From Tubulanus polymorphus (lineage: Eukaryota > Animalia > Nemertea): DNA of 64,000 nucleotides. Shown in pieces: positions 3,298 through 64,000 of the stretch (position 1 is the first letter of the stretch; the number at the start of each line of letters is the position of its first letter). The translations under genes were made by a program, and so were the position numbers. The notes under the pieces are model-generated. The model searched no databases. It was not told the origin of the DNA and saw only the letters and a program-made list of their open reading frames with translations. The stretch spans positions 11,726,655 to 11,790,654 of the forward strand of contig NC_134033.1 of the NCBI RefSeq assembly GCF_964204645.1, given 5' to 3'.

Positions 3298-6200
3298 TTA
3301 CTCTAAGTCGACGTTTAAGGCGTATCGTCGATATTTGCGTGTCTTAGTTTTTGTCTTAAATTCTGTACCAGCCACAAGATCGTATTGAGTGGCGTAATTT
3401 TTGTATCTGATATATTCGTAAGTCGTGAATCCTGGTGGTTTCACGTCGACTGATAGATCACAAGTTAAAACCTTCGAATTATTGACTGTTGTGAATATAC
3501 CCAAGAAATCTCCTTTCTTGACTGCAATGCGCTGATCTACCGGTACATCAACCTGTTAAAATGAGTAGATATATGTGCTAAGATAAGGTCTATTTCAAAC
3601 ACATCGTGATCGTGAAGTCACGCATATTACTAATCAGGCTCAATTACTTCATTCACTGGATGTCTTTAAACCAAGTAAATACATAGACCTATATGATAGA
3701 TATCATCAGTATATCCCGATTTTAATGATTGGTTCAAAAAACTGTCGTGTCAACGCATATTTAGGTGAAATGGATTAGAATTAAAAAGAAAAAAACAAAA
3801 TTACCGAAACTTTTCCTGTTTTCGCGCCGCTCAGAACCTGGAACCCGATAAGTTTGAAAGTGTGGCTACCGGTTTTTCTGAAAACTGCGCCATTCACATC
3901 CCTGCCGTTGCCGGTCGAATAGTAGTTCCAACGAATAATGGAGGAATCACACGGTATTTTGTAATCGAGAAGAACTACTAATGAGTTCACGTGTTTCCAA
4001 CTGCCTCTAGTCATGTTCTTTCCTCCAACTTTTACATTACACGTTGATGGTGGTGGTGTCGGTGCAGGTGTCGGTGCAGGTGTTGGTGGTGTGGTCGGTG
4101 ACGATTTCGGTGTCGTAGCAGTTGCATCTATCCCTAAGCCAACGAAAAATACAGAATATAATTCAATTAGTCTGAGTGTGTTGCACTGACGTCACGGCCA
4201 GTGGCTAGAGCTGTATTGTATCATTAAATGTACTTCGTTTAGCCGCTAATGCTTGTTGTCAAATACGGATAATGCGTAAAGCTCCACCCATAATAGACAA
4301 TAGTCACACGATTGTAGATGACGGGTAGTTTGAATTAGATATCAAAATACATAAAGTGACTCATAATTCTATATTAGGGCTGGGTACCAAACCTTTATAT
4401 TCTGTCTATTTTCATGTCACTATAATAAATGAAAAATAAAAAATACATGCGTTTTAAATTCCCCACCCACCACTCTCTATAGTTAAGAAAAGATTTAGCA
4501 AAAATACATGACTTTGAAGGAAAAATCTCGTGGCCCAACGATGACTTTTATTTACCGAATTTGCAGAGTGGTCCGGCAAATGAATTGGTGCAGGCGCAAT
4601 TTGCTTCTCCTAACTCGTTCTTGGAGCACGTTCCTCCATTCTGACATGGATTCGGGTCACACGGGTCACCGACTGAAATGAGAAATGCAGAACGCCATTT
4701 AAACTCAGAGACTCGCAATATGCGATTTACTATTAACAACATGCGATAAACAATATGCGATTTACGATTAACGATATGCGATAAACAATACGCGTTTTAC
4801 GATTAACAATATGCGATAAACAATATGCGATTTACGATTAACAATATGCGATATTTGAGACCCGACATCACTTACCTATTTCACAGAGATCCCCTGAGAA
4901 ATTAGGAGGGCAGTCACACACAGGTTTACCGTCAACAGAGTAACATTCACCACCGTTTGAACAGTTCGTATTGGTGCAAATATCTACAACAAAATGTGAT
5001 TAATGTTAACAACTGGAGAAATGAACTTGAGATTACAATTGAGGAGATTTAAATAACGGTTCAACCTACCGCAATCAGCAACCGGGATGCATCTCGACGC
5101 GGTGTAAATAAAACCGGCATCGCATTCACATCCGGCAGAGTTTGGTAAATCACAATTTGCCGCATCGACGGTTCGTTGTTCACATGTTGGTTGACAACCG
5201 GACATTTTTCTGTTAAAAGCACTGTTTGCGGGACAATTTGGCACTAAAATAAAATATATCAGCGCTACTATAACATTATACACGATTTAGTCTCTATGTT
5301 TCTTGTCTTTTAGTGGTTTTTATCTCTTTTGTTTTTTTAAAATTAATTCTATATGAGCTAAATGCCATTATGTAGTCTATGCCGGTATGTTCTGAGTTTA
5401 AAACAAATTTGTATTCAGATTCACGGGAGTATCGCGATTATATCGTGTATCTTTGAACACGTCGAGTGTAAATAATGTCAAAGATGTTTCTATAGATTTG
5501 AAAATCGTGATTCAGCGGACCTACAAAGTGTACGGCATACTCTGCGTGACAGGCACATCAGACGGAACAATTTCTGGTATTAATGAATTCATGCAATCTT
5601 TCTTTCTATATCAGAAAACCTTTCTTCCATCGCTTAGTTATTTCTATTATCTATACATAACATAATTTCTCTTACGGCACAAATTTGCCGTTCTCCACGT
5701 GGCCACTGTATGTCCAGCCTCTTCACACGCAGTCTCCGCCTCGGTTAGCGACGAACAAATGGCTTGCATATCACCTCTCATCGCCGCTCCGTCAAATACA
5801 CAGTTGTCGAAAGTCGTGGTTATAGTGGTATCATTAGCACCGATACATTCACCGAATGGACCGTCAACTTTATTCAACAGACCGCAGAAATTATCAGCAC
5901 CGTATTTCGTCTTATCGGCTTCCGTTGGTACGAATGGCTCACTTGAAACAGACGAAAATATCAACTTCAATGGAAAATATTTACGGCAACTTTACTAGAA
6001 ACTCGATCAGAATTACTCGATACAAACGTGAAATCTAAGACAGTATGTACAAGGTGCGAAATGCAAGATGATCAAATAGAAATTTCCGTTAACCTCCGGC
6101 AAAATTCACATCCTAGGCGCGTGGGATTTGAATAATGATCGTAGACATTCAGTGAATGTGGTTTCTTTTGCCCTTGATGTATTTTGACATAATTTGTTCT

Positions 6201-8996: not shown

Positions 8997-10906
8997 CTGT
9001 GGTTTTTATGCTATAAGCTTAGTGAAATATCAAATATTTGATCATATTTAAAGGAATATTACTAATATTGGCCATGGTTATGCAGTAAACAGAGTATCCT
9101 CCAAATCTAATAAAATTCTCCAAAGTGTTCGAATAACAATGGATCTATCATCACAAGTACATGTTACTAGATCGAATATTTATTGATCTTATTTTACAAT
9201 TGTAATTGGCAATCGTGAGTATCACTTCCATTAAATATTTGTTTTTCAACAGTAGGTTTCATTTTCAGATTAAGTCTTCTATGCGTTAATAATTTCATGC
9301 CTCGCAAATCTAAAAGACATTGTATGCGAGGTACAATAGCATGTTATTAGATATACAGTTGGAGACGTCTATAGTTGAAATATATTTATACAATGATTAA
9401 GTCTTTACAAACATAACGTCATTTTGCATGTGCTCGAATTTCTCCGGATAACAACGGAAAATGATAAAAAAACGGCTTTTAGTTCACCATGATTTGCAGT
9501 AATAAAACTGGCAACTCGTTTTAAAAGTGCACAGTTCATCTCATAAGTAAGGTCTTTATTGCCGTTTAGTAAGAGGGAACATTTGTCGGATTGTGTCAGT
9601 CTGTTTAACTTGCTAGTTCGCGGAAAAGACGAAGTTGGTCGATTTCTAACACATGGGATGGGTTACGGCACTGGAAGATAAAATGACGAGTAATGAGGTT
9701 TACGTTATAGTACGAACAATGAGGATATACTTTGTTGCCAAAATCATGCATGAACATATGATGTTTCAGTAAGAAGTCTGCGCGAAGTCTGTTCAGGTTA
9801 ACCTCATCATGAATTCCTGGTAGATACTGTACTTAAGATGAATTTGAAATGGCCTTTCACGTAATAGGATTTGAATTGTGACAGGGAAGAGAGATTTCTG
9901 ATTTGACAATCAAGTTTATTCCCAGTAAAATATGAAATTGCCCTATTGAATGTAAATCAGAATTCTCGTCTTTTAGAATTATTGTCGTGGATTTTGTCGA
10001 TACATGATTTCAATTTTAGTATACCAAAATACGACTGTACTATGATGAAGAGATCGTTCTAAAACAGCCATAACTTTTCGCTTAATAAGTTAACGAGAAC
10101 TCATTAGTTTTAGGTTCCTCTTGTCTTTCAAAGTCGGTATTGCCGCAATGATAACACGTGACGCAGTCATTTCAACGCGATAGAAATATAAACGAGTTTT
10201 TAGTTTTGCTGATTTGCAACGACTGATTCATCGTTGGCTAAAGCTTAATCAATCGCTGATCTATCTTCGATGGCCGTAAGATTGACAAAATCTCATTCTT
10301 CCGTATATACATATCATGAAGCGAATTATCCAATAATACCCTCTTGCCGAAGTGATACGTATGTTGACCACTTGAAAATTGAAAATATTTTCGTTCCGAT
10401 AAAGTCGGTAATATTTAGTTAATCAAACAGCTGGATGTCTGAAAGGAGAAACTAATGAAATGAAAAATATTTCATCTGAACAAGATATTAATACTTCAAT
10501 CGCTTGAATATTGATATATGCGATATTATGAGGCGTATGTTATGAAAGTGAGTGTAAGTGAAAGCCATTCACTGGGTGTTGATTGGAATTTCATTTTATT
10601 TGACAAGTCCCGACAAATCATGTACGATACGAAATTGTGTACGGCTTCGAGATGGGTGTCTTTGCGAGGGGCTTCTATCTTGAGCACATCCGTATCCCCA
10701 TGACACGATTCCATTGAGTTTATACCGTCCGTTCACTTCACTAATTGAAAATGAATTTAATTACCTACTGTCCAAAACAATGAGCGGGGCTGATAGCCCA
10801 CTGTGGGTCGATCAAAGTGGCTCAACATCCTTGGAATCCGTTGTTTGTCAGACCAGCCATCCACGGCCAGCTTCCGGGACGAGCTTCTTGGCCACCGACA
10901 ATTCGG

Positions 10907-11014
10907 GACCCTGTTCCACAGGTCTGAGTTAAATTTGACTCTATAGTTAAAACATTGAAAATGAACTAACTTTAACTAAGCGTTAACTCTAACTCACAAC
11001 TGTGGGACCGAGTC
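10907..11014. mobile_element. Duplicated copy of the 108-bp MITE
   Basis: Same sequence and same site as 495-602. Confidence 0.75.
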
Positions 11015-11212
11015 CTGAATCCACCCAAACCATTTCCTGGTCGTTGTTGGTCTCATGGTTGATGTTGGTCTCATGGTTGTTGTTGATCTCATGGTTGTAG
11101 TCTTCGGTTTCCGCGTGGTCGATGTTACTCCCGGGGGTGACGGGGTCACTGTAGTGTGAATAATAACCATATTTTGAATAAGACTGTCTTATTTTCTTAA
11201 AAAAAGTATTTC

Positions 11213-11595
11213 AGGATAGGATAGGATAGGAAATTTCTATAGCGCCTTGTAAATAGCAGGGCTATTATCAAAGGCGCTCTCCAGACGAAGATGATGACTT
11301 GAACAGAAATGTCTTGAGCTGTGCTTTGAATGCTGGTAGAGAGTCAATATCACGGAGAGGTTGCGGAAGGGAGTTCCACACTATAGGTGCAGATGTCTCA
11401 AATGCACGTCTGCCGAATGACTTATGACGACATGATCTGACTAACAGAAGGTTCTGCGACCCGTTACGTAATTTACTTATTTTATAGGCCATTGGATGAA
11501 GGCGAAACTCAAGACGACATGATCTGACTAACAGAAGGTTCTGCGACCCGTTACGTAATTTACTTATTTTATAGACCATTGGATGAAGGCGAAAT
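11213..11595 (-). mobile_element. Duplicated L2/CR1 LINE 3' end with an internal ~87-bp tandem duplication
   Basis: Same as 801-1075; the segment FRLHPMxYKISKLRNGSQNLLLVRSCR appears twice in the ORF track. Confidence 0.85.
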
Positions 11596-12008
11596 GACAG
11601 GAAATTGCAAGATGGGAGAAATTCAAATGTAGCTGACACGATTCTGTAAAGGCTTGTTCAAAATAGATAACAGTAGTACGTCCGATCATAAACATTACAT
11701 AAAACTTACCGAACGTCGGAATGAACTCATATCTGAAACCAGATTTTTGGACATTCTCGTTCGAATAAAACGCTAAGGACTCGCAGTCGCATACATGTAT
11801 GATTCGATATTCGGTCCGGTCTGTCCGCAATGGGGCGCAAGTCCATTATAACATTAAATAGTTCCAGCAGAGACTTATCACATTGGACTGGTATTTGGAA
11901 TTAATCCGCCAATATTGGACTGATTGAATCTTACGACATTACGCCGTAGGACGTGCGGCTCAACTCCAGAACAGGTAAAAGTAGAGATCTATCAATCCTA
12001 AATATCGG

Positions 12009-12180: not shown

Positions 12181-12195
12181 CATGTTTATATCAAT

Positions 12196-15151: not shown

Positions 15152-20963
<5,812 letters not shown>

Positions 20964-25500: not shown

Positions 25501-25863
25501 AATTCAACCGTTTTCAACTTAACAACGAATCCTTCCGGAGCCGTGATGTACGACGAGCAGTAGTAGTCAGAATCGTAACTGGCCGAGCCGTACTTGGCGT
25601 GTGATAGGAATTCACCCGAATAACCGTCTCCAACGTCGATGGCGGTTCCACATATGCCTGTTACCCAATAGAATAATGATGTTGAAAATAGCAATAGAAA
25701 TAGTTACGGAACGAACGAACGAACGAACGAACGAGTATTTTCGAGTATTTGCGGCGGATCGCTAACAATTGGAAATTTCACGAAAAGTAAACTCATACTT
25801 ACCCGCAAATGCTTGCTGCGCACAGGCAATGAGAACAAGAACGACAACTATCGCTAACTTCAT
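22517..25863 (-). CDS. Secreted CUB-domain trypsin-like (S1A) serine protease, ~443 aa, intact
   Basis: Exons 25863-25803 (signal peptide [20 protein letters not shown]), 25657-25465 and 25054-24861 (CUB), 24695-24371 (Thr/Pro linker, CG, R|IVGG, SAAHC), 23973-23720 (DITLLKL), 23304-23162 (HDSCQ), 22678-22517 (GDSGGP...TAG). Total 1332 nt in frame; the S1 Asp implies Lys/Arg specificity. Confidence 0.95.
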
Positions 25864-26102
25864 ATTCAGACCGGATTGTACCGTGCGATCTATACGACCT
25901 TTGACTATCAGCCGTTGAACAACCCCTTTTAAGTCCATCGTGCTGACCACCAGATGCTCGATATGACAGACCCACTACAAGCCTTTAATCTCCCTATCAT
26001 AAATCGGTGCAACAGTGATCCCGATATCTTAATCACATATAATCGTCCGCATTAAATACCGTTCAGAGATAATAACATGTTCGAAAATCAGTGCATTGAC
26101 AA

Positions 26103-26480
26103 CGGTGGCTGATTCGGTCCTTACTAAAAAAATTTTCTGTACGGCTAGAGCAACGATGACAAAATGTTCACAGTGGCCCGTTTTTTACTTTTCTCGCGCG
26201 AGAATTCAAAAAGTTTGGTTTTCTCGCGCGAGAAAACAAAAAAATGGGCCATTTGTAAAAAATTTTTATCCAGCTTCTAGCCAGTCAGAAAAATTTTAAG
26301 CCAAAATGTTTTGTTTTCTCGCGCGAGAAAACCAAAATGTTTTGAATCCTCACGCGAGAAAACCAAAATGTTTTGTTTTCTCGCGCGAGAAAACCAAAAA
26401 AAGTGCCACTGTGAACATTTTTTTAATCGTTGCTCTAGCCTTACAGAAAGTTTTTTTAGTATGGCCCGAATCAGCCACCA
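26103..26480. mobile_element. ~380-bp foldback MITE with long TIRs and internal TTTTCTCGCGCGAGAAAA palindromes
   Basis: ~100-bp imperfect TIRs (cggtggctgattcgg... / ...ccgaatcagccacca) followed by TA on the right, suggesting a Tc1/mariner-like origin. Confidence 0.8.
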
Positions 26481-26578
26481 TACATTTACTGTTAATCAAA
26501 TATATAATTGAAGGGAGTATATTTTCCAATGATTCCTCAAGTGTTTGAAAATCCCTCGTTTTTTTTTATATTCTCACG

Positions 26579-49100: not shown

Positions 49101-52100
49101 GAACATTCGCATTTCTGATTTTGTGAGTTATAAACCATCTTCGAGTCTTTACATTCACATTTACCATTTCGTTCAACCATACCCTTTTTACACTTCGCAG
49201 TCGTTGTTGTTGCAGGCTGCTTCGTTGTTTCAGTGGTCGGTGCTGGGCCTGCCGACGTTGTAACTGGTGGACTAGTCGTTGTCTTTTCGGGACTTGGAGG
49301 TGACGTTTTTGGTGTGGATTTCGTTGTCATTTGTCCACAAGTATTCGTCGCACTATCCCACGTCGCTTTCCCGTCGCATTTACACATTTTTGTCGTTTGG
49401 TCAAACGTAGATCCAGAGACACATGATGTGCACTTGTTCGTCTTTTTATCGACGAACTTAGGTGCTTTACAAACGCAATTTTTACTGACGAGTGTAAATC
49501 CATTTTTGCAATCGCATTTATCCCCATTTTCAGTCGATGCTGAAGGACAAACACATTTACCACTTTTGTCTCGGAACTTGTCACCTTTACAAGAATTCGG
49601 TTTACACGTTTTAGAGGCTTCGTCATATTGCTGTCCATTGGGACACGTTTCACATTTTCCATCCTTAACGTATTTCGGAGGATCACATTTGCAAACTTTA
49701 TCAACGGCGTTCATTTGGAAACCATTTTCGCACTTACAATCCTTCGATGGTTCATCGTATTTAGAATTTTGTGGACATTCGCACTTGTTATTTTTCTCTA
49801 CCATTACACCCGAACATTCGCATTTCTGATTTTGTGAGTTATAAACCATCTTCGAGTCTTTACATTCACATTTACCATTTCGTTCAACCATACCCTTTTT
49901 ACACTTTGCAGTCGTTGTTGTTGCAGGCTGCTTCGTTGTTTCAGTGGTCGGTGCTGGGCCTGCCGACGTTGTAACTGGTGGACTAGTCGTTGTCTTTTCG
50001 GGACTTGGAGGTGACGTTTTTGGTGTGGATTTCGTTGTCATTTGTCCACAAGTATTCGTCGCACTATCCCACGTCGCTTTCCCGTCGCATTTACACATTT
50101 TTGTCGTTTGGTCAAACGTAGATCCAGAGACACATGATGTGCACTTGTTCGTCTTTTTATCGACGAACTTAGGTGCTTTACAAACGCAATTTTTACTGAC
50201 GAGTGTAAAGCCATTTTTGCAATCGCATTTATCCCCATTTTCAGTCGATGCTGAAGGACAAACACATTTACCACTTTTGTCTCGGAACTTGTCACCTTTA
50301 CAAGAATTCGGTTTACACGTTTTAGAGGCTTCGTCATATTGCTGTCCATTGGGACACGTTTCACATTTTCCATCCTTAACGTATTTCGGAGGATCACATT
50401 TACAAACTTTATCAACGGCGTTCATTTGGAAACCATTTTCGCACTTACAATCCTTCGATGGTTCATCGTATTTAGAATTTTGTGGACATTCGCACTTGTT
50501 ATTTTTCTCTACCATTACACCCGAACATTCGCATTTCTGATTTTGTGAGTTATAAACCATCTTCGAGTCTTTACATTCACACTTACCATTTCGTTCAACC
50601 ATACCCTTTTTACACTTTGCAGTCGTTGTTGTTGCAGGCTGCTTCGTTGTTTCAGTGGTCGGTGCTGGGCCTGCCGACGTTGTAACTGGTGGACTAGTCG
50701 TTGTCTCTTCGGGACTTGGAGGTGACGTTTTTGGTGTGGATTTCGTTGTCATTTGTCCACAAGTATTCGTCGCACTATCCCACGTCGCTTTCCCGTCGCA
50801 TTTACACATTTTTGTCGTTTGGTCAAACGTAGATCCAGAGACACATGATGTGCACTTGTTCGTCTTTTTATCGACGAACTTAGGTGCTTTACAAACGCAA
50901 TTTTTACTGACGAGTGTAAAGCCATTTTTGCAATCGCATTTATCCCCATTTTCAGTCGATGCTGAAGGACAAACACATTTACCACTTTTGTCTCGGAACT
51001 TGTCACCTTTACAAGAATTCGGTTTACACGTTTTAGAGGCTTCGTCATATTGCTGTCCATTGGGACACGTTTCACATTTTCCATCCTTAACGTATTTCGG
51101 AGGATCACATTTGCAAACTTTATCAACGGCGTTCATTTGGAAACCATTTTCGCACTTACAATCCTTCGATGGTTCATCGTATTTAGAATTTTGTGGACAT
51201 TCGCACTTGTTATTTTTCTCTACCATTACACCCGAACATTCGCATTTCTGATTTTGTGAGTTATAAACCATCTTCGAGTCTTTACATTCACATTTACCAT
51301 TTCGTTCAACCATACCCTTTTTACACTTTGCAGTCGTTGTTGTTGCAGGCTGCTTCGTTGTTTTAGTGGTCGGTGCTGGGCCTGCCGACGTTGTAACTGG
51401 TGGACTAGTCGTTGTCTTTTCGGGACTTGGAGGTGACGTTTTTGGTGTGGATTTCGTTGTCATTTGTCCACAAGTATTCGTCGCACTATCCCACGTCGCT
51501 TTCCCGTCGCATTTACACATTTTTGTCGTTTGGTCAAACGTAGATCCAGAGACACATGATGTGCACTTGTTCGTCTTTTTATCGACGAACTTAGGTGCTT
51601 TACAAACGCAATTATTACTGACGAGTGTAAAGCCATTTTTGCAATCGCATTTATCCCCATTTTCAGTCGATGCTGAAGGACAAACACATTTACCACTTTT
51701 GTCTCGGAACTTGTCACCTTTACAAGAATTCGGTTTACACGTTTTAGAGGCTTCGTCATATTGCTGTCCATTGGGACACGTTTCACATTTTCCATCCTTA
51801 ACGTATTTCGGAGGATCACATTTGCAAACTTTATCAACGGCGTTCATTTGGAAACCATTTTCGCACTTACAATCCTTCGATGGTTCATCGTATTTAGAAT
51901 TTTGTGGACATTCGCACTTGTTATTTTTCTCTGCCATTACACCCGAACATTCGCATTTCTGATTTTGTGAGTTATAAACCATCTTCGAGTCTTTACATTC
52001 ACATTTACCATTTCGTTCAACCATACCCTTTTTACACTTTGCAGTCGTTGTTGTTGCAGGCTGCTTCGTTGTTTCAGTGGTCGGTGCTGGGCCTGCCGAC

Positions 52101-55100
52101 GTTGTAACTGGTGGACTAGTCGTTGTCTTTTCGGGACTTGGAGGTGACGTTTTTGGTGTGGATTTCGTTGTCATTTGTCCACAAGTATTCGTCGCACTAT
52201 CCCACGTCGCTTTCCCGTCGCATTTACACATTTTTGTCGTTTGGTCAAACGTAGATCCAGAGACACATGATGTGCACTTGTTCGTCTTTTTATCGACGAA
52301 CTTAGGTGCTTTACAAACGCAATTTTTACTGACGAGTGTAAAGCCATTTTTGCAATCGCATTTATCCCCATTTTCAGTCGATGCTGAAGGACAAACACAT
52401 TTACCACTTTTGTCTCGGAACTTGTCACCTTTACAAGAATTCGGTTTACACGTTTTAGAGGCTTCGTCATATTGCTGTCCATTGGGACACGTTTCACATT
52501 TTCCATCCTTAACGTATTTCGGAGGATCACATTTGCAAACTTTATCAACGGCGTTCATTTGGAAACCATTTTCGCACTTACAATCCTTCGATGGTTCATC
52601 GTATTTAGAATTTTGTGGACATTCGCACTTGTTATTTTTCTCTACCATTACACCCGAACATTCGCATTTCTGATTTTGTGAGTTATAAACCATCTTCGAG
52701 TCTTTACATTCACATTTACCATTTCGTTCAACCATACCCTTTTTACACTTTGCAGTCGTTGTTGTTGCAGGCTGCTTCGTTGTTTCAGTGGTCGGTGCTG
52801 GGCCTGCCGACGTTGTAACTGGTGGACTAGTCGTTGTCTTTTCGGGACTTGGAGGTGACGTTTTTGGTGTGGATTTCGTTGTCATTTGTCCACAAGTATT
52901 CGTCGCACTATCCCACGTCGCTTTCCCGTCGCATTTACACATTTTTGTCGTTTGGTCAAACGTAGATCCAGAGACACATGATGTGCACTTGTTCGTCTTT
53001 TTATCGACGAACTTAGGTGCTTTACAAACGCAATTATTACTGACGAGTGTAAAGCCATTTTTGCAATCGCATTTATCCCCATTTTCAGTCGATGCTGAAG
53101 GACAAACACATTTACCACTTTTGTCTCGGAACTTGTCACCTTTACAAGAATTCGGTTTACACGTTTTAGAGGCTTCGTCATATTGCTGTCCATTGGGACA
53201 CGTTTCACATTTTCCATCCTTAACGTATTTCGGAGGATCACATTTGCAAACTTTATCAACGGCGTTCATTTGGAAACCATTTTCGCACTTACAATCCTTC
53301 GATGGTTCATCGTATTTAGAATTTTGTGGACATTCGCACTTGTTATTTTTCTCTGCCATTACACCCGAACATTCGCATTTCTGATTTTGTGAGTTATAAA
53401 CCATCTTCGAGTCTTTACATTCACATTTACCATTTCGTTCAACCATACCCTTTTTACACTTTGCAGTCGTTGTTGTTGCAGGCTGCTTCGTTGTTTCAGT
53501 GGTCGGTGCTGGGCCTGCCGACGTTGTAACTGGTGGACTAGTCGTTGTCTTTTCGGGACTTGGAGGTGACGTTTTTGGTGTGGATTTCGTTGTCATTTGT
53601 CCACAAGTATTCGTCGCACTATCCCACGTCGCTTTCCCGTCGCATTTACACATTTTTGTCGTTTGGTCAAACGTAGATCCAGAGACACATGATGTGCACT
53701 TGTTCGTCTTTTTATCGACGAACTTAGGTGCTTTACAAACGCAATTTTTACTGACGAGTGTAAAGCTATTTTTGCAATCGCATTTATCCCCATTTTCAGT
53801 CGATGCTGAAGGACAAACACATTTACCACTTTTGTCTCGGAACTTGTCACCTTTACAAGAATTCGGTTTACACGTTTTAGAGGCTTCGTCATATTGCAGT
53901 CCATTGGGACACGTTTCACATTTTCCATCCTTAACGTATTTCGGAGGATCACATTTGCAAACTTTATCAACGGCGTTCATTTGGAAACCATTTTCGCACT
54001 TACAATCCTTCGATGGTTCATCGTATTTAGAATTTTGTGGACATTCGCACTTGTTATTTTTCTCTACCATTACACCCGAACATTCGCATTTCTGATTTTG
54101 TGAGTTATAAACCATCTTCGAGTCTTTACATTCACATTTACCATTTCGTTCAACCATACCCTTTTTACACTTTGCAGTCGTTGTTGTTGCAGGCTGCTTC
54201 GTTGTTTCAGTGGTCGGTGCTGGGCCTGCCGACGTTGTAACTGGTGGACTAGTCGTTGTCTTTTCGGGACTTGGAGGTGACGTTTTTGGTGTGGATTTCG
54301 TTGTCATTTGTCCACAAGTATTCGTCGCACTATCCCACGTCGCTTTGCCGTCGCATTTACACATTTTTGTCGTTTGGTCAAACGTAGATCCAGAGACACA
54401 TGATGTGCACTTGTTCGTCTTTTTATCGACGAACTTAGGTGCTTTACAAACGCAATTTTTACTGACGAGTGTAAAGCCATTTTTGCAATCGCATTTATCC
54501 CCATTTTCAGTCGATGCTGAAGGACAAACACATTTACCACTTTTGTCTCGGAACTTGTCACCTTTACAAGAATTCGGTTTACACGTTTTAGAGGCTTCGT
54601 CATATTGCTGTCCATTGGGACACGTTTCACATTTTCCATCCTTAACGTATTTCGGAGGATCACATTTGCAAACTTTATCAACGGCGTTCATTTGGAAACC
54701 ATTTTCGCACTTACAATCCTTCGATGGTTCATCGTATTTAGAATTTTGTGGACATTCGCACTTGTTATTTTTCTCTACCATTACACCCGAACATTCGCAT
54801 TTCTGATTTTGTGAGTTATAAACCATCTTCGAGTCTTTACATTCACATTTACCATTTCGTTCAACCATACCCTTTTTACACTTCGCAGTCGTTGTTGTTG
54901 CAGGCTGCTTCGTTGTTTCAGTGGTCGGTGCTGGGCCTGCCGACGTTGTAACTGGTGGACTAGTCGTTGTCTTTTCGGGACTTGGAGGTGACGTTTTTGG
55001 TGTGGATTTCGTTGTCATTTGTCCACAAGTATTCGTCGCACTATCCCACGTCGCTTTCCCGTCGCATTTACACATTTTTGTCGTTTGGTCAAACGTAGAT

Positions 55101-58100
55101 CCAGAGACACATGATGTGCACTTGTTCGTCTTTTTATCGACGAACTTAGGTGCTTTACAAACGCAATTTTTACTGACGAGTGTAAATCCATTTTTGCAAT
55201 CGCATTTATCCCCATTTTCAGTCGATGCTGAAGGACAAACACATTTACCACTTTTGTCTCGGAACTTGTCACCTTTACAAGAATTCGGTTTACACGTTTT
55301 AGAGGCTTCGTCATATTGCTGTCCATTGGGACACGTTTCACATTTTCCATCCTTAACGTATTTCGGAGGATCACATTTGCAAACTTTATCAACGGCGTTC
55401 ATTTGGAAACCATTTTCGCACTTACAATCCTTCGATGGTTCATCGTATTTAGAATTTTGTGGACATTCGCACTTGTTATTTTTCTCTACCATTACACCCG
55501 AACATTCGCATTTCTGATTTTGTGAGTTATAAACCATCTTCGAGTCTTTACATTCACATTTACCATTTCGTTCAACCATACCCTTTTTACACTTTGCAGT
55601 CGTTGTTGTTGCAGGCTGCTTCGTTGTTTCAGTGGTCGGTGCTGGGCCTGCCGACGTTGTAACTGGTGGACTAGTCGTTGTCTTTTCGGGACTTGGAGGT
55701 GACGTTTTTGGTGTGGATTTCGTTGTCATTTGTCCACAAGTATTCGTCGCACTATCCCACGTCGCTTTCCCGTCGCATTTACACATTTTTGTCGTTTGGT
55801 CAAACGTAGATCCAGAGACACATGATGTGCACTTGTTCGTCTTTTTATCGACGAACTTAGGTGCTTTACAAACGCAATTTTTACTGACGAGTGTAAAGCC
55901 ATTTTTGCAATCGCATTTATCCCCATTTTCAGTCGATGCTGAAGGACAAACACATTTACCACTTTTGTCTCGGAACTTGTCACCTTTACAAGAATTCGGT
56001 TTACACGTTTTAGAGGCTTCGTCATATTGCTGTCCATTGGGACACGTTTCACATTTTCCATCCTTAACGTATTTCGGAGGATCACATTTACAAACTTTAT
56101 CAACGGCGTTCATTTGGAAACCATTTTCGCACTTACAATCCTTCGATGGTTCATCGTATTTAGAATTTTGTGGACATTCGCACTTGTTATTTTTCTCTAC
56201 CATTACACCCGAACATTCGCATTTCTGATTTTGTGAGTTATAAACCATCTTCGAGTCTTTACATTCACACTTACCATTTCGTTCAACCATACCCTTTTTA
56301 CACTTTGCAGTCGTTGTTGTTGCAGGCTGCTTCGTTGTTTCAGTGGTCGGTGCTGGGCCTGCCGACGTTGTAACTGGTGGACTAGTCGTTGTCTCTTCGG
56401 GACTTGGAGGTGACGTTTTTGGTGTGGATTTCGTTGTCATTTGTCCACAAGTATTCGTCGCACTATCCCACGTCGCTTTCCCGTCGCATTTACACATTTT
56501 TGTCGTTTGGTCAAACGTAGATCCAGAGACACATGATGTGCACTTGTTCGTCTTTTTATCGACGAACTTAGGTGCTTTACAAACGCAATTTTTACTGACG
56601 AGTGTAAAGCCATTTTTGCAATCGCATTTATCCCCATTTTCAGTCGATGCTGAAGGACAAACACATTTACCACTTTTGTCTCGGAACTTGTCACCTTTAC
56701 AAGAATTCGGTTTACACGTTTTAGAGGCTTCGTCATATTGCTGTCCATTGGGACACGTTTCACATTTTCCATCCTTAACGTATTTCGGAGGATCACATTT
56801 GCAAACTTTATCAACGGCGTTCATTTGGAAACCATTTTCGCACTTACAATCCTTCGATGGTTCATCGTATTTAGAATTTTGTGGACATTCGCACTTGTTA
56901 TTTTTCTCTACCATTACACCCGAACATTCGCATTTCTGATTTTGTGAGTTATAAACCATCTTCGAGTCTTTACATTCACATTTACCATTTCGTTCAACCA
57001 TACCCTTTTTACACTTTGCAGTCGTTGTTGTTGCAGGCTGCTTCGTTGTTTTAGTGGTCGGTGCTGGGCCTGCCGACGTTGTAACTGGTGGACTAGTCGT
57101 TGTCTTTTCGGGACTTGGAGGTGACGTTTTTGGTGTGGATTTCGTTGTCATTTGTCCACAAGTATTCGTCGCACTATCCCACGTCGCTTTCCCGTCGCAT
57201 TTACACATTTTTGTCGTTTGGTCAAACGTAGATCCAGAGACACATGATGTGCACTTGTTCGTCTTTTTATCGACGAACTTAGGTGCTTTACAAACGCAAT
57301 TATTACTGACGAGTGTAAAGCCATTTTTGCAATCGCATTTATCCCCATTTTCAGTCGATGCTGAAGGACAAACACATTTACCACTTTTGTCTCGGAACTT
57401 GTCACCTTTACAAGAATTCGGTTTACACGTTTTAGAGGCTTCGTCATATTGCTGTCCATTGGGACACGTTTCACATTTTCCATCCTTAACGTATTTCGGA
57501 GGATCACATTTGCAAACTTTATCAACGGCGTTCATTTGGAAACCATTTTCGCACTTACAATCCTTCGATGGTTCATCGTATTTAGAATTTTGTGGACATT
57601 CGCACTTGTTATTTTTCTCTGCCATTACACCCGAACATTCGCATTTCTGATTTTGTGAGTTATAAACCATCTTCGAGTCTTTACATTCACATTTACCATT
57701 TCGTTCAACCATACCCTTTTTACACTTTGCAGTCGTTGTTGTTGCAGGCTGCTTCGTTGTTTCAGTGGTCGGTGCTGGGCCTGCCGACGTTGTAACTGGT
57801 GGACTAGTCGTTGTCTTTTCGGGACTTGGAGGTGACGTTTTTGGTGTGGATTTCGTTGTCATTTGTCCACAAGTATTCGTCGCACTATCCCACGTCGCTT
57901 TCCCGTCGCATTTACACATTTTTGTCGTTTGGTCAAACGTAGATCCAGAGACACATGATGTGCACTTGTTCGTCTTTTTATCGACGAACTTAGGTGCTTT
58001 ACAAACGCAATTTTTACTGACGAGTGTAAAGCCATTTTTGCAATCGCATTTATCCCCATTTTCAGTCGATGCTGAAGGACAAACACATTTACCACTTTTG

Positions 58101-61100
58101 TCTCGGAACTTGTCACCTTTACAAGAATTCGGTTTACACGTTTTAGAGGCTTCGTCATATTGCTGTCCATTGGGACACGTTTCACATTTTCCATCCTTAA
58201 CGTATTTCGGAGGATCACATTTGCAAACTTTATCAACGGCGTTCATTTGGAAACCATTTTCGCACTTACAATCCTTCGATGGTTCATCGTATTTAGAATT
58301 TTGTGGACATTCGCACTTGTTATTTTTCTCTACCATTACACCCGAACATTCGCATTTCTGATTTTGTGAGTTATAAACCATCTTCGAGTCTTTACATTCA
58401 CATTTACCATTTCGTTCAACCATACCCTTTTTACACTTTGCAGTCGTTGTTGTTGCAGGCTGCTTCGTTGTTTCAGTGGTCGGTGCTGGGCCTGCCGACG
58501 TTGTAACTGGTGGACTAGTCGTTGTCTTTTCGGGACTTGGAGGTGACGTTTTTGGTGTGGATTTCGTTGTCATTTGTCCACAAGTATTCGTCGCACTATC
58601 CCACGTCGCTTTCCCGTCGCATTTACACATTTTTGTCGTTTGGTCAAACGTAGATCCAGAGACACATGATGTGCACTTGTTCGTCTTTTTATCGACGAAC
58701 TTAGGTGCTTTACAAACGCAATTATTACTGACGAGTGTAAAGCCATTTTTGCAATCGCATTTATCCCCATTTTCAGTCGATGCTGAAGGACAAACACATT
58801 TACCACTTTTGTCTCGGAACTTGTCACCTTTACAAGAATTCGGTTTACACGTTTTAGAGGCTTCGTCATATTGCTGTCCATTGGGACACGTTTCACATTT
58901 TCCATCCTTAACGTATTTCGGAGGATCACATTTGCAAACTTTATCAACGGCGTTCATTTGGAAACCATTTTCGCACTTACAATCCTTCGATGGTTCATCG
59001 TATTTAGAATTTTGTGGACATTCGCACTTGTTATTTTTCTCTGCCATTACACCCGAACATTCGCATTTCTGATTTTGTGAGTTATAAACCATCTTCGAGT
59101 CTTTACATTCACATTTACCATTTCGTTCAACCATACCCTTTTTACACTTTGCAGTCGTTGTTGTTGCAGGCTGCTTCGTTGTTTCAGTGGTCGGTGCTGG
59201 GCCTGCCGACGTTGTAACTGGTGGACTAGTCGTTGTCTTTTCGGGACTTGGAGGTGACGTTTTTGGTGTGGATTTCGTTGTCATTTGTCCACAAGTATTC
59301 GTCGCACTATCCCACGTCGCTTTGCCGTCGCATTTACACATTTTTGTCGTTTGGTCAAACGTAGATCCAGAGACACATGATGTGCACTTGTTCGTCTTTT
59401 TATCGACGAACTTAGGTGCTTTACAAACGCAATTTTTACTGACGAGTGTAAAGCCATTTTTGCAATCGCATTTATCCCCATTTTCAGTCGATGCTGAAGG
59501 ACAAACACATTTACCACTTTTGTCTCGGAACTTGTCACCTTTACAAGAATTCGGTTTACACGTTTTAGAGGCTTCGTCATATTGCTGTCCATTGGGACAC
59601 GTTTCACATTTTCCATCCTTAACGTATTTCGGAGGATCACATTTGCAAACTTTATCAACGGCGTTCATTTGGAAACCATTTTCGCACTTACAATCCTTCG
59701 ATGGTTCATCGTATTTAGAATTTTGTGGACATTCGCACTTGTTATTTTTCTCTACCATTACACCCGAACATTCGCATTTCTGATTTTGTGAGTTATAAAC
59801 CATCTTCGAGTCTTTACATTCACATTTACCATTTCGTTCAACCATACCCTTTTTACACTTTGCAGTCGTTGTTGTTGCAGGCTGCTTCGTTGTTTCAGTG
59901 GTCGGTGCTGGGCCTGCCGACGTTGTAACTGGTGGACTAGTCGTTGTCTTTTCGGGACTTGGAGGTGACGTTTTTGGTGAGGATTTCGTTGTCATTTGTC
60001 CACAAGTATTCGTCGCACTATCCCACGTCGCTTTCCCGTCGCATTTACACATTTTTGTCGTTTGGTCAAACGTAGATCCAGAGACACATGATGTGCACTT
60101 GTTCGTCTTTTTATCGACGAACTTAGGTGCTTTACAAACGCAATTTTTACTGACGAGTGTAAAGCCATTTTTGCAATCGCATTTATCCCCATTTTCAGTC
60201 GATGCTGAAGGACAAACACATTTACCACTTTTGTCTCGGAACTTGTCACCTTTACAAGAATTCGGTTTACACGTTTTAGAGGCTTCGTCATATTGCTGTC
60301 CATTGGGACACGTTTCACATTTTCCATCCTTAACGTATTTCGGAGGATCACATTTGCAAACTTTATCAACGGCGTTCATTTGGAAACCATTTTCGCACTT
60401 ACAATCCTTCGATGGTTCATCGTATTTAGAATTTTGTGGACATTCGCACTTGTTATTTTTCTCTACCATTACACCCGAACATTCGCATTTCTGATTTTGT
60501 GAGTTATAAACCATCTTCGAGTCTTTACATTCACATTTACCATTTCGTTCAACCATACCCTTTTTACACTTTGCAGTCGTTGTTGTTGCAGGCTGCTTCG
60601 TTGTTTCAGTGGTCGGTGCTGGGCCTGCCGACGTTGTAACTGGTGGACTAGTCGTTGTCTTTTCGGGACTTGGAGGTGACGTTTTTGGTGTGGATTTCGT
60701 TGTCATTTGTCCACAAGTATTCGTCGCACTATCCCACGTCGCTTTGCCGTCGCATTTACACATTTTTGTCGTTTGGTCAAACGTAGATCCAGAGACACAT
60801 GATGTGCACTTGTTCGTCTTTTTATCGACGAACTTAGGTGCTTTACAAACGCAATTTTTACTGACGAGTGTAAAGCCATTTTTGCAATCGCATTTATCCC
60901 CATTTTCAGTCGATGCTGAAGGACAAACACATTTACCACTTTTGTCTCGGAACTTGTCACCTTTACAAGAATTCGGTTTACACGTTTTAGAGGCTTCGTC
61001 ATATTGCTGTCCATTGGGACACGTTTCACATTTTCCATCCTTAACGTATTTCGGAGGATCACATTTGCAAACTTTATCAACGGCGTTCATTTGGAAACCA

Positions 61101-64000
61101 TTTTCGCACTTACAATACTTCGATGGTTCATCGTATTTAGAATTTTGTGGACATTCGCACTTGTTATTTTTCTCTACCATTACACCCGAACATTCGCATT
61201 TCTGATTTTGTGAGTTATAAACCATCTTCGAGTCTTTACATTCACATTTACCATTTCGTTCAACCATACCCTTTTTACACTTTGCAGTCGTTGTTGTTGC
61301 AGGCTGCTTCGTTGTTTCAGTGGTCGGTGCTGGGCCTGCCGACGTTGTAACTGGTGGACTAGTCGTTGTCTTTTCGGGACTTGGAGGTGACGTTTTTGGT
61401 GTGGATTTCGTTGTCATTTGTCCACAAGTATTCGTCGCACTATCCCACGTCGCTTTGCCGTCGCATTTACACATTTTTGTCGTTTGGTCAAACGTAGATC
61501 CAGAGACACATGATGTGCACTTGTTCGTCTTTTTATCGACGAACTTAGGTGCTTTACAAACGCAATTTTTACTGACGAGTGTAAAGCCATTTTTGCAATC
61601 GCATTTATCCCCATTTTCAGTCGATGCTGAAGGACAAACACATTTACCACTTTTGTCTCGGAACTTGTCACCTTTACAAGAATTCGGTTTACACGTTTTA
61701 GAGGCTTCGTCATATTGCTGTCCATTGGGACACGTTTCACATTTTCCATCCTTAACGTATTTCGGAGGATCACATTTGCAAACTTTATCAACGGCGTTCA
61801 TTTGGAAACCATTTTCGCACTTACAATCCTTCGATGGTTCATCGTATTTAGAATTTTGTGGACATTCGCACTTGTTATTTTTCTCTACCATTACACCCGA
61901 ACATTCGCATTTCTGATTTTGTGAGTTATAAACCATCTTCGAGTCTTTACATTCACATTTACCATTTCGTTCAACCATACCCTTTTTACACTTTGCAGTC
62001 GTTGTTGTTGCAGGCTGCTTCGTTGTTTCAGTGGTCGGTGCTGGGCCTGCCGACGTTGTAACTGGTGGACTAGTCGTTGTCTCTTCGGGACTTGGAGGTG
62101 ACGTTTTTGGTGTGGATTTCGTTGTCATTTGTCCACAAGTATTCGTCGCACTATCCCACGTCGCTTTCCCGTCGCATTTACACATTTTTGTCGTTTGGTC
62201 AAACGTAGATCCAGAGACACATGATGTGCACTTGTTCGTCTTTTTATCGACGAACTTAGGTGCTTTACAAACGCAATTATTACTGACGAGTGTAAAGCCA
62301 TTTTTGCAATCGCATTTATCCCCATTTTCAGTCGATGCTGAAGGACAAACACATTTACCACTTTTGTCTCGGAACTTGTCACCTTTACAAGAATTCGGTT
62401 TACACGTTTTAGAGGCTTCGTCATATTGCTGTCCATTGGGACACGTTTCACATTTTCCATCCTTAACGTATTTCGGAGGATCACATTTGCAAACTTTATC
62501 AACGGCGTTCATTTGGAAACCATTTTCGCACTTACAATCCTTCGATGGTTCATCGTATTTAGAATTTTGTGGACATTCGCACTTGTTATTTTTCTCTACC
62601 ATTACACCCGAACATTCGCATTTCTGATTTTGTGAGTTATAAACCATCTTCGAGTCTTTACATTCACATTTACCATTTCGTTCAACCATACCCTTTTTAC
62701 ACTTTGCAGTCGTTGTTGTTGCAGGCTGCTTCGTTGTTTCAGTGGTCGGTGCTGGGCCTGCCGACGTTGTAACTGGTGGACTAGTCGTTGTCTTTTCGGG
62801 ACTTGGAGGTGACGTTTTTGGTGTGGATTTCGTTGTCATTTGTCCACAAGTATTCGTCGCACTATCCCACGTCGCTTTGCCGTCGCATTTACACATTTTT
62901 GTCGTTTGGTCAAACGTAGATCCAGAGACACATGATGTGCACTTGTTCGTCTTTTTATCGACGAACTTAGGTGCTTTACAAACGCAATTTTTACTGACGA
63001 GTGTAAAGCCATTTTTGCAATCGCATTTATCCCCATTTTCAGTCGATGCTGAAGGACAAACACATTTACCACTTTTGTCTCGGAACTTGTCACCTTTACA
63101 AGAATTCGGTTTACACGTTTTAGAGGCTTCGTCATATTGCTGTCCATTGGGACACGTTTCACATTTTCCATCCTTAACGTATTTCGGAGGATCACATTTG
63201 CAAACTTTATCAACGGCGTTCATTTGGAAACCATTTTCGCACTTACAATCCTTCGATGGTTCATCGTATTTAGAATTTTGTGGACATTCGCACTTGTTAT
63301 TTTTCTCTACCATTACACCCGAACATTCGCATTTCTGATTTTGTGAGTTATAAACCATATTAGAGTCTTTACATTCACATTTACCATTTCGTTCAACCAT
63401 ACCCTTTTTACACTTTGCAGTCGTTGTTGTTGCAGGCTGCTTCGTTGTTTCAGTGGTCGGTGCTGGGCCTGCTGACGTTGTAACTGGTGGACTAGTCGTT
63501 GTCTTTTCGGGACTTGGAGGTGACGTTTTTGGTGTGGATTTCGTTGTCATTTGTCCACAAGTATTCGTCGCACTATCCCACGTCGCTTTCCCGTCGCATT
63601 TACACATTTTTGTCGTTTGGTCAAACGTAGATCCAGAGACACATGATGTGCACTTGTTCGTCTTTTTATCGACGAACTTAGGTGCTTTACAAACGCAATT
63701 TTTACTGACGAGTGTAAAGCCATTTTTGCAATCGCATTTATCCCCATTTTCAGTCGATGCTGAAGGACAAACACATTTACCACTTTTGTCTCGGAACTTG
63801 TCACCTTTACAAGAATTCGGTTTACACGTTTTAGAGGCTTCGTCATATTGCTGTCCATTGGGACACGTTTCACATTTTCCATCCTTAACGTATTTCGGAG
63901 GATCACATTTGCAAACTTTATCAACGGCGTTCATTTGGAAACCATTTTCGCACTTACAATACTTCGATGGTTCATCGTATTTAGAATTTTGTGGACATTC
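28166..64000 (-). CDS. Giant secreted Cys/Lys-rich mucin/silk-like protein (5'-partial): repeat mega-exon, then VWA-EGF-VWA-EGF-VWA-PAN-VWD-C8-(CPxG modules)-VWA-(CPxG modules)-Ser/Lys tail
   Basis: Manual GT-AG model with all phases consistent: >64000-39628, 39533-39112, 38884-38740 (VWA1), 38293-38171 (Ca-EGF, DIDEC), 38107-37902, 37798-37670, 37541-37325 (VWA2), 37220-37122, 36831-36712 (Ca-EGF, DVDEC), 36365-36256, 36009-35771, 35646-35453 (VWA3), 35150-35097, 35007-34738 (PAN/apple), 34384-34137, 33987-33816, 33582-33456 (VWD, GLCGNCNG), 33328-33133, 32646-32562 (C8), 32480-32427, 32347-32300, 32055-31948, 31617-31546, 31447-31227, 30959-30755, 30514-30395 (VWA4), 30267-30208, 30088-30041, 29906-29859, 29728-29609, 29463-29416, 29319-29254, 29136-29023, 28680-28166 (TGA). 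About 1,667 aa follow the mega-exon. Confidence 0.88.
34525..34657. mobile_element. Tc1/mariner (pogo/Tigger-like) MITE in an intron
   Basis: TIRs CAGTGGGACCTCGTTATAAC / GTTGTAACGAGGTTCCACTG, with TA on the right flank. Confidence 0.8.
36491..36652. repeat. ~81-bp direct tandem duplication in an intron
   Basis: ccacgtttaggaaaaataaa...ggtaccgagagtaagg occurs twice. Confidence 0.85.
39628..64000 (-). CDS. Mega-exon (>=24,373 bp, >=8,120 codons) of the giant protein
   Basis: Uninterrupted ORF (track 39611..63934) that stays open to the window edge. It ends at donor AAAG|GTATGT (exon end 39628, phase 1), which joins the VWA1 exon in frame. Confidence 0.93.
40630..46200. repeat. Coding tandem array of ~7 x 822-bp units (274 aa, 30 Cys)
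   Basis: Period of 822 bp (40707, 41529, 42351, 43173, 43995, 44817, 45639). Same 13-module core as the 711-bp unit plus two extra two-Cys modules in the linker. Confidence 0.96.
46200..64000. repeat. Coding tandem array of ~25 x 711-bp units (237 aa: 26 Cys, ~38 Lys, ~48-aa PTS linker)
   Basis: Shadow ORFs recur every 711 bp (46389, 47100, 47811 ... 62742). Units differ by only a few SNPs. Confidence 0.97.

Follow-up and report, generated by a model that had tools for sequence, protein, structure and literature searches.

A cluster of genes for probable secreted structural proteins in the ribbon worm Tubulanus polymorphus: a giant Lys/Cys-rich scaffold, a CUB-trypsin protease and a tandem array of GDPH-containing VWD genes

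What is made by a run of closely packed genes for a giant repeat protein, a protease and small VWD proteins, and do the products belong together? The question is raised by a stretch of 64,000 nucleotides from Tubulanus polymorphus (contig NC_134033.1, positions 11,726,655 to 11,790,654), hereafter the window. The species is a palaeonemertean, a ribbon worm that secretes mucus heavily, and its genus is known for secreted tubes. In the literature searched, nemertean mucus proteomics is centred on toxins, and no account of Tubulanus tubes or of nemertean structural mucus proteins was found. The original prediction described four co-oriented genes with no other gene between them, possibly forming a tube, mucus or adhesive kit. 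From its sequence every product does look extracellular, and the scaffold resembles mucins and the flatworm adhesive protein ap2; the sole link that would tie the genes into a kit is their adjacency. We give a probability of about 0.55 to the reading that the cluster encodes structural material for secretion, with epidermal mucus, a tube lining or glue as the likeliest kinds.

The largest gene, judged by its anatomy, would encode a secreted, Lys/Cys-rich, mucus-type protein of about 14,000-15,000 residues, the scaffold. The window cuts this gene, and its features are as follows.

39611..64000, minus strand: giant coding exon, in-window part (open frame and repeat census)
28166..39588, minus strand: C-terminal module of about 25 exons (Pfam exon by exon, open segments, RNA contigs)
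39103-39588, 37821-38123, 36241-36414, 35770-36009, 31173-31478 and 30711-30986, minus strand: C-terminal VWA exons (Pfam)
38130-38474 and 36617-36892, minus strand: C-terminal EGF_CA exons (Pfam)
34676-35053, minus strand: C-terminal PAN exon (Pfam)
34080-34463, 33805-34080 and 33386-33616, minus strand: C-terminal VWD, with GGKQ
33094-33363, minus strand: C8-like exon, unscored by Pfam
28832-32122, minus strand: two-Cys 'CPxG' mini-exons
28166-28168, minus strand: stop codon of the last exon, which is Ser/Lys-rich

The open frame of the giant exon runs from window position 39614 to 72238 (10,875 codons, 32.6 kb), extending 8 kb past the window end. It holds 30 K/C-rich repeats of 237 aa, seven variant repeats of 274 aa and a unique Cys-rich tail; a TTPKG repeat and a 29-aa hairpin unit, both located past the window end, bring the repeat types to four. 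The predicted composition of about 16% Lys and 11% Cys agrees with the values measured in the 237-aa repeat (K 16.0%, C 11.0%, 26 Cys). Short two-Cys modules alternate in it with Thr/Pro/Ser linkers, the PTS linker being about 49 aa long, and the Lys content gives a net positive charge. The 711-bp units that encode this repeat are 99.4-100% identical in DNA. Pfam returned zero matches on the giant exon, and word-based searches of proteins of 130-415 aa and of 4,459-14,187 aa detected no relatives of the 237-aa repeat.

Modules of the same kinds (VWA, EGF_CA, PAN and VWD-C8) flank the giant exon on both sides, with TIL on the N-terminal side only; Pfam, run exon by exon, did not find it on the C-terminal side. 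The upstream exons, reaching to about window 86 kb, encode a signal peptide, VWA, EGF_CA, PAN, VWD with GDPH, C8, TIL and VWA, and the signal-like N-terminus lies at window +85.6-86.0 kb. Strand, order and shared module type suggest that these exons are continuous with the giant exon. Genome-wide, each of the two PAN exons matches the other best, so the end modules appear to be internal duplicates. Each end has a single VWD and there is no D1-D2-D'D3 array; the last exons gave no Pfam match to CTCK, the cystine knot.

Downstream of the scaffold on the same strand is a serine protease gene, separated from it by a spacer that contains a repeat.

26050..26850, no strand assigned: high-copy interspersed repeat in the scaffold-protease spacer (word depth in the thousands in a DNA run, with many loose ends)
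22517..25863, minus strand: CUB-PTS-trypsin serine protease (Pfam, residue reading, spliced RNA contig)
25863, minus strand: ATG of the signal peptide exon
25464-25703 and 24861-25010, minus strand: CUB
24369-24695, 23717-23971, 23161-23301 and 22677 to the stop at 22517-22519, minus strand: RNA-defined exons

Four of the exons have Pfam Trypsin matches, and the domain order (signal-CUB-PTS-trypsin) is that of a zymogen of the S1A type. The trypsin-type, Lys/Arg-specific activity that had been predicted fits the residues read: the catalytic triad consists of H57 (AAHC), D102 (DITLL) and S195 (GDSGGP); Asp189 occurs in HDSCQ/GDSGGP, where GGHDSCQ aligns with GGIDSCQ of enteropeptidase; Gly216 and Gly226 of the S1 pocket are read in SWGYGC...SPGVY; and the activation site is R/IVGG (FR/IVGG). 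Enteropeptidase, trypsin and kallikrein head the PDB matches, and in these Asp189 is aligned. Judged by these residues, the protein is a secreted Lys/Arg-specific zymogen. Its gene is expressed and spliced, as a 1.1-kb contig crosses four introns with GT-AG joints. Because that contig is spliced, run X4, one of four, is identified as RNA. Contigs from the same run cover the 3' end of the scaffold (27404-27916 and 28192-28449) at a depth similar to that over the protease. The RNA evidence consists of contigs from this one run, with reads examined over 6 kb that take in the protease and the scaffold 3' end.

On the far side of the protease lies an array of small VWD genes. The original prediction counted two, and both are in the window, but the array comprises seven tandem paralogues, five of them beyond the window start, with all exon types present.

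15152..20570, minus strand: small VWD gene, window paralogue 2 (exon-wise Pfam, open segments, splice junction)
20250-20408, 19347-19505, 16616-16822 and one ending at 16336, minus strand: EGF exons of paralogue 2
18962-19258 and 18299-18580, minus strand: VWD of paralogue 2, with GDPH
17382-17720, minus strand: C8 of paralogue 2
16782-17048, minus strand: TIL of paralogue 2
15642-15991 and 15155-15424, minus strand: PTS and jelly-roll domain X of paralogue 2
3298..8546, minus strand: small VWD gene, window paralogue 1 (exon order as in paralogue 2)
10599..11845, minus strand: decayed protease fragments (IVGG exon, last exon, CUB exon), with stops inside the matches
187..1423, minus strand: second set of decayed protease fragments, with stops inside the matches

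The domain order of the small proteins is EGF-EGF-VWD-C8-TIL-EGF-EGF-PTS-jelly roll; paralogue 1 departs from it at 7273-7458, where its second EGF exon has either been replaced or diverged. In paralogue 2 a phase-1 splice junction from 16336 to 15991 joins an EGF exon in phase to the PTS/domain-X exon; copies 1-6 all retain its acceptor. Paralogue 2 encodes a hydrophobic stretch at about 20520-20570, and no clean start exon or signal peptide was found among the candidate ATGs of the small genes. Units of the array share 83-96% DNA identity, with dN/dS of 0.4-0.6. The decayed protease fragments between VWD copies are passengers of the tandem duplication unit. Because that unit originally included protease exons, the adjacency of protease and VWD gene predates expansion of the array. 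Together with the high-copy repeat, these fragments qualify the claim of an uninterrupted run of genes; the part of it that stands is the shared minus strand and the close packing, across spacers of 1.5-2 kb. An astacin-TSP1-MAM protease gene lies immediately upstream of the scaffold, which is thus flanked on both sides by genes for secreted proteases, one trypsin-like and one astacin.

The C-terminal domain of the small proteins, domain X, has no Pfam match and appears to be an undescribed jelly-roll domain. AlphaFold predicts an all-beta jelly roll from a twelve-row alignment (pLDDT 67); an earlier model from six rows had a pLDDT of 52. Foldseek of the model against PDB returned nothing at E <= 0.001, and the VIA wide structure search gave generic jelly-roll matches with a best Z of 7.2, in the range that the tool calls unspecific. 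Among solved folds, CBM, lectin, discoidin and PHR modules come nearest; protein atlas scores (<= 0.85) are uninformative. The predicted model makes 'lectin-like' a lead for this domain. RefSeq models P0001 and P0006 show it as stand-alone proteins of 155 aa, and it occurs without VWD in other animals, namely in P0003 (five copies), Saccoglossus, Capitella and Ruditapes. Database searches used single exons; P0001 represents the spliced form of domain X.

The original prediction set small VWD proteins that keep the GDPH motif against a scaffold that has lost it. Its first half is upheld in all seven paralogues, each with GDPH, an upstream Cys (C-x3-G-D-P-H) and Gln at +14. Its second half applies to the C-terminal VWD of the scaffold, in which GGKQ replaces GDPH; because the N-terminal VWD, outside the window, retains the motif, the scaffold as a whole is not GDPH-less and the contrast fails. 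The motif context is C-S-V-Y-GDPH...NFQG in the paralogues, ...EFQG in the N-terminal VWD of the scaffold and DFTG in its C-terminal VWD. The importance of GDPH, the upstream Cys and Gln+14 has been demonstrated in FCGBP (PMC10880436), where a helper Gln lies 14 residues past the Asp and the Cys just upstream serves an inter-fragment disulfide (PMC10880436, PMC8267560). With these residues in place, the GDPH of the small VWD proteins most likely self-cleaves. The furin processing also proposed for them did not hold up, since no R-X-[KR]-R site occurs in the VWD exons (those of paralogue 2 were read). The sole minimal candidate, RKYR, lies nine residues from the C-terminus and adjoins the segment aligned with the last beta-strand of domain X. 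The sequence gives no support to a furin-processed precursor.

How far these genes act in concert can be weighed from the same observations. That scaffold, protease and VWD array are tightly linked and share one orientation would suit a coordinated kit, in which the protease, perhaps with the upstream astacin, matures or releases the scaffold, and anhydrides of the GDPH-VWD proteins couple covalently, through Asp-Lys isopeptide bonds or esters to glycans, and harden a tube, cocoon or glue. MUC2 mucus, for comparison, is released by meprin-type astacins. That the array's duplication unit once included protease exons, and that a scaffold with 16% Lys sits beside a Lys/Arg-specific protease, also argue for such a kit, as do the inter-alpha-inhibitor heavy chains, which couple by way of an anhydride; coupling to Lys has been proposed, in the account given in PMC8267560. 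We nevertheless regard this explanation as unlikely. The anhydride of FCGBP undergoes hydrolysis and is buried, and cross-links to MUC2 were looked for without success (PMC8267560); GDPH cleavage there instead makes the VWD domain more stable to trypsin (PMC10880436). This weakens the predicted coupling of an Asp anhydride to Lys and makes it improbable here. The GDPH in the N-terminal VWD of the scaffold speaks against a division of labour between scaffold and partners, the furin site is missing, and co-expression is seen in a single RNA run. Far less probable again is a dedicated material-making cassette in which two flanking zymogen proteases process the scaffold and GDPH-VWD anhydrides form Asp-Lys or Asp-glycan links; were it true, GDPH chemistry would for the first time be seen to harden a natural material.

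The genes could instead be unrelated neighbours: a giant mucin, a protease of digestive, immune or toxin type, and a lectin-like or immune VWD family expanding independently, with linkage a by-product of local duplication. Trypsin genes are common in this genome, with at least 131 exon matches, and the closest paralogues of the protease sit on its own chromosome at a distance of about 1 Mb, so its position next to the scaffold may be coincidental. Domain X has an existence apart from VWD in other animals, and in nemerteans serine proteases have been reported as toxins or enzymes of the mucus (PMC12846013). This account is somewhat unlikely, however, as secreted protease genes stand on both sides of the scaffold, the seven VWD genes carry the VWD-C8-TIL assembly of its N-terminal end, and all the genes are co-oriented across short spacers; the similar contig depth of protease and scaffold 3' end in one RNA run points weakly the same way.

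If the cluster encodes secreted structural material, as we favour, the scaffold would behave like a gel-forming mucin or flatworm ap2 adhesive. Its ends could multimerise through VWD/C8/VWA contacts and disulfides, its Thr/Pro/Ser linkers would be O-glycosylated, and its Lys-rich core may bind anionic glycans or surfaces. The small VWD proteins would be FCGBP-like accessory proteins, secreted into the mucus or tube and perhaps interacting there with the other products. Their GDPH self-cleavage would take place early in secretion, with the fragments staying disulfide-linked and the domain thereby stabilised, and the jelly-roll domain X is a probable binding head, possibly for glycan. For the CUB-trypsin protease, adjacency alone suggests a possible part in trimming the Lys-rich scaffold or setting it free. 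Astacins and serine proteases are both present in nemertean mucus proteomes (PMC11768458, PMC12846013). The locus thus supplies candidate structural proteins of nemertean mucus or tube: the scaffold, seven GDPH-VWD proteins and the flanking proteases. Should these proteins co-occur in tube or mucus, they would form a compact system for assembly and release of a giant extracellular polymer, and one for asking whether GDPH chemistry cross-links a material. They would also be a model of gene growth, with nearly identical 711-bp units and an array that keeps remnants of its duplication unit.

Several known systems share parts of this design. The Balbiani-ring silk proteins of Chironomus are giant (~1 MDa), Cys-containing, Lys-rich tandem-repeat secretory proteins, encoded largely in one huge exon, which build underwater tubes; their context is an insect salivary gland. 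They are not known to have VWD/VWA ends or to be related to the scaffold in sequence. Gel-forming mucins and FCGBP are alike in their VWD-C8-TIL assemblies, in a huge central tandem-repeat exon with Thr/Pro/Ser linkers, in a small-to-medium VWD partner with C-x3-GDPH and Gln+14, and in protease-dependent mucus handling. As in MUC2, VWD-C8-TIL flanks the repeat exon, although the C-terminal side has VWD and a C8-like exon without TIL. The scaffold differs from gel-forming mucins in that it has neither a cystine-knot end nor the D1-D2-D'D3 array, carries VWA, PAN and EGF_CA at its ends, and builds its repeats from Lys/Cys-rich two-Cys modules instead of PTS alone. The small VWD protein differs from FCGBP in having one VWD rather than 13, together with EGFs and a Pfam-less jelly roll.

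The sea-star protein Sfp1 and further footprint proteins of echinoderms, as PMC6410801 and PMC9382459 describe them, are Cys-rich, secreted and multi-domain; they contain VWD, C8 and EGF and occur alongside proteases in footprints. Compared by description, Sfp1 differs in its galactose-binding lectin and discoidin domains and in lacking a giant tandem-repeat exon. Flatworm ap2 (Macrostomum, Minona, Theama; PMC6410801, PMC9229212), likewise compared by description, is a giant secreted protein of at least 7,000 residues with very long exons, VWD/TIL near its ends and tandem repeats of 220-330 aa in its centre. Its repeat blocks (21 x 255 and 25 x 221 aa; 8 x 330 and 12 x 230 aa) can be set beside the 30 x 237 and 7 x 274 aa of the scaffold (PMC6410801, PMC9229212). 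Flatworm ap1 shares the positive charge from Lys and the VWD-C8-TIL and EGF modules, and the flatworm adhesion work found no protease role (PMC6410801, PMC9229212). The scaffold differs from both ap1 and ap2 in having no TSP1 or LDLa and in combining Lys and Cys modules in one protein, and the word-based searches with its 237-aa repeat, limited to the two length classes given above, showed no similarity in sequence to them. Vertebrate mucus and flatworm glue both pair a giant repeat protein with a VWD partner, and the cluster would carry that design into another phylum.

The locus has the anatomy of secreted polymer-forming material. Tubulanus species live in secreted tubes. The DNA of the window is from an animal; its GT-AG introns are short and its G+C content is about 40%. 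The source genome is that of a palaeonemertean, Tubulanus polymorphus, whose flow-cytometry genome size of 313-358 Mb is broadly compatible with the 268-Mb assembly (PMC8468679). The cluster proper comprises an astacin gene, a giant gene for a Lys/Cys-rich mucin-type protein (the scaffold), a trypsin-type protease gene and seven copies of a small VWD gene, about 140 kb altogether. The astacin gene, which encodes TSP1 repeats and two MAM domains, adjoins the scaffold upstream and is co-oriented with it, so the giant gene has secreted proteases on both flanks. Beyond the last VWD copy come an ShK gene, a carboxypeptidase, a transporter and a PLP enzyme, and these set the limit of the cluster. 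Genes are listed below in window coordinates, which may run past the window ends. All homology searches were run on single exons rather than on joined spliced models.

+89,500 to +93,400, outside the window, minus strand: astacin-TSP1-MAM gene (HExxH exon, domain matches)
28166 to beyond the window end, minus strand: scaffold gene
22517-25863, minus strand: protease gene
15152-20570, minus strand: small VWD gene, copy 2
3298-8546, minus strand: small VWD gene, copy 1
-52,767 to -52,282, minus strand: ShK gene, encoding two Cys motifs of the ShK type as well as Gly/Asn/Ala repeats, just past the last VWD copy
about -69 to -66 kb, plus strand: M14-type carboxypeptidase gene, after the ShK gene

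On the minus strand, a reading frame is open from 39611 up to the end of the window and, with the flank included, on to 72238. This giant exon of the scaffold has 10,875 codons, a length given independently by the genome search. From its 5' start it contains:

a short Cys-rich stretch
about 58 copies of a TTPKG unit of 6-7 aa
about 36 copies of a two-Cys unit of 29 aa
30 copies of a 237-aa unit
7 copies of a variant of 274 aa, lower in Lys
a unique Cys-rich tail

The 237-aa unit measures 16.0% Lys and 11.0% Cys, in agreement with the original prediction of about 16% and 11%. Its 26 Cys residues occur as C-x-C or C-x2-C pairs, one per 13-16 residues, in an array broken by a 49-residue Thr/Pro/Ser linker. 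The repeat had no Pfam match, no other occurrence in a genome-wide search, and no relatives in two word-based protein searches, each restricted to certain length classes. At the DNA level the 711-bp units (window 46389-63338 and beyond) are 99.4-100% identical among themselves, whereas divergence between the adjacent VWD gene copies is 4-17%. Such uniformity implies that amplification was very recent or homogenisation strong, or else collapse or expansion in the assembly.

Modules of a single type bracket the giant exon. On its 3' side, exon-by-exon Pfam matches give the order VWA, EGF_CA, VWA, EGF_CA, VWA, PAN, VWD and VWA, followed by a series of mini-exons that encode a single CPxG...C module with two Cys apiece; the last exon is Ser/Lys-rich. 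The N-terminal side, outside the window on the same strand, has a signal-like start and GGAGPTTKAS repeats, then VWA exons, EGF_CA, more VWA, PAN, VWD, C8, TIL and VWA, and two-Cys mini-exons again lead into the giant exon. The best genome-wide match of the upstream PAN exon is the downstream PAN exon, so the two ends are duplicates, now diverged, of one module. From order, strand and shared module type, we treat the scaffold as one continuous gene of about 58 kb and 14,000-15,000 codons. Its C-terminal VWD reads IQGGKQYVSY...DFTG and has lost the Asp, Pro and His together with the Gln at +14, a residue shown to be important by FCGBP mutagenesis (PMC10880436). Loss of GDPH from the scaffold, as previously described, holds for this domain only; the N-terminal VWD reads TSGDPHFFNF...EFQG. 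A division of labour between a GDPH-less scaffold and GDPH-bearing small proteins is not supported, because the scaffold itself carries such a site.

In the neighbouring protease, a signal peptide and a CUB domain are joined through a Thr/Pro-rich linker to a trypsin domain. The full catalytic triad, R|IVGG activation site and Asp189 bear out its assignment as trypsin-type. Among solved structures it is closest to enteropeptidase, trypsin and plasma kallikrein, and the alignment includes the Asp189 segment. Its paralogues lie at a distance of about 1 Mb; genome-wide there are at least 131 trypsin-exon matches. One of four public runs holding this DNA behaves as RNA. Read contigs were examined over 6 kb spanning the protease and the scaffold 3' end; they do not rank expression levels. 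In a contig of 1,102 nt, five exons of the protease are spliced together across four CT..AC introns (GT..AG on the minus strand), so the protease is expressed. Other contigs from that run cover the last exon and 3' UTR of the scaffold, whose 3' end is present in that sample too. The scaffold-protease spacer holds a very high-copy interspersed repeat (26050-26850; in the DNA run its word depth reaches thousands and rearranged joints are numerous), which includes a 31-bp tandem repeat at 26301-26399.

The seven VWD copies are all in tandem on one strand and reach 47 kb past the window start. Two of the seven lie in the window. The VWD units share 83-96% DNA identity, with greater divergence in more distant copies. 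Every exon type is present in each copy, in the order EGF, EGF, VWD, C8, TIL, EGF, EGF, a 45-residue Thr/Pro linker and a Pfam-less C-terminal domain (domain X) by exon-wise Pfam search. Crude dN/dS against copy 2 is 0.4-0.6, an overestimate because stop-to-stop segments take in intron flanks. The motif C-S-V-Y-G-D-P-H-Y...F-Q-G is kept in 7/7 copies, as anticipated for GDPH. Furin processing, also proposed, is not borne out: no R-X-[K/R]-R site was found in the VWD exons, and the sole basic cluster, RKYRR, nine residues from the protein end, adjoins RYALN, which aligns with the last strand of domain X in its relatives. A start exon was looked for and not found; the only candidate signal is a hydrophobic stretch encoded directly upstream of the first EGF exon. 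In copy 1, the place of the second EGF exon is taken at 7273-7458 by a diverged EGF-like stretch; past DRRSRTC it no longer follows the Cys pattern of EGF, and it may be a frameshifted or alternative exon.

The first four spacers between copies contain decayed protease pieces with stops (the IVGG exon, last exon and CUB exon). The first duplicated unit therefore extended into the protease, and protease-VWD adjacency predates the expansion of the array. Duplication unit 2 has an insert of about 1 kb, absent from unit 1, at 12009-13061. Within it a 50-bp G-rich tandem repeat (11.6 copies) lies between two arrays of 42-bp tandem repeats that are inverted relative to each other (12009-12179 and 12810-13061), so that the insert resembles a mobile element of the foldback type. 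The intron splitting the VWD domain of copy 2 carries a 130-copy AT dinucleotide microsatellite (18670-18929), absent from copy 1.

Domain X of two paralogues appears in RefSeq as stand-alone 155-aa proteins that start at an internal Met (P0001 and P0006); P0001, an uncharacterised T. polymorphus protein, matches the last two exons of one small VWD gene in a profile search. In copy 2 a GTAAAT donor closes the preceding EGF exon in phase 1 (16336|); the PTS/X exon opens in that phase too (|15991), preceded by a pyrimidine tract and TAG. Copies 1-6 conserve this acceptor, and copies 5 and 6 show a same-phase GTAAG donor. These sites make fusion of domain X to the VWD gene the better model, and suggest that the stand-alone models are truncated. 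The second exon of the domain has only four HMMER matches among 1.84 billion representative proteins, one of them a protein with five tandem copies from another invertebrate assembly; profile search adds single-domain proteins from Saccoglossus, Ruditapes and Capitella. Family members share the motifs W..Y...G..V..V.R and I.V..GD.(I/L)G. An AlphaFold model from a 12-row alignment is all-beta (pLDDT 67, pTM 0.69) and had no significant Foldseek match. Exhaustive structural alignment gave a best Z of 7.2, in a range flagged as unspecific by the aligner itself, with further matches at Z 4-6 to many carbohydrate-binding modules, F-type lectins, discoidin and PHR domains. We therefore call domain X a jelly roll of an undescribed family; glycan binding is only a lead.

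The original observation is confirmed in part and considerably extended. The original prediction of a secretion-material locus is supported in part, but not its furin processing or a GDPH division of labour. Judged from adjacency, the trypsin-like protease might act on the scaffold, and a 16%-Lys substrate would be chemically reasonable. Astacins and serine proteases are present in nemertean mucus proteomes (PMC11768458, PMC12846013). The Lys-rich fibre had also been suggested to be cross-linked through an Asp anhydride. Such an anhydride does form at GDPH, and its coupling to nucleophiles was proposed, but when tested directly in FCGBP it proved to be hydrolysed; the C-terminus created by cleavage was buried, and no covalent bond to MUC2 was found (PMC8267560). 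In FCGBP, GDPH cleavage instead raises domain stability and trypsin resistance (PMC10880436). By analogy with FCGBP, a role of GDPH in maturation of the VWD fold is more likely here than one in cross-linking, and Asp-Lys cross-linking seems unlikely.

In design, the scaffold locus comes closest to the gel-forming mucins of vertebrates together with FCGBP, their partner protein, and to ap2, an adhesive protein of flatworms. With no cystine knot and a single VWD at each end, the scaffold differs from canonical gel-forming mucins. Ap2 has VWD/TIL ends and repeats of 21 x 255 and 25 x 221 aa in Macrostomum, and of 8 x 330 and 12 x 230 aa in Theama (PMC6410801, PMC9229212).
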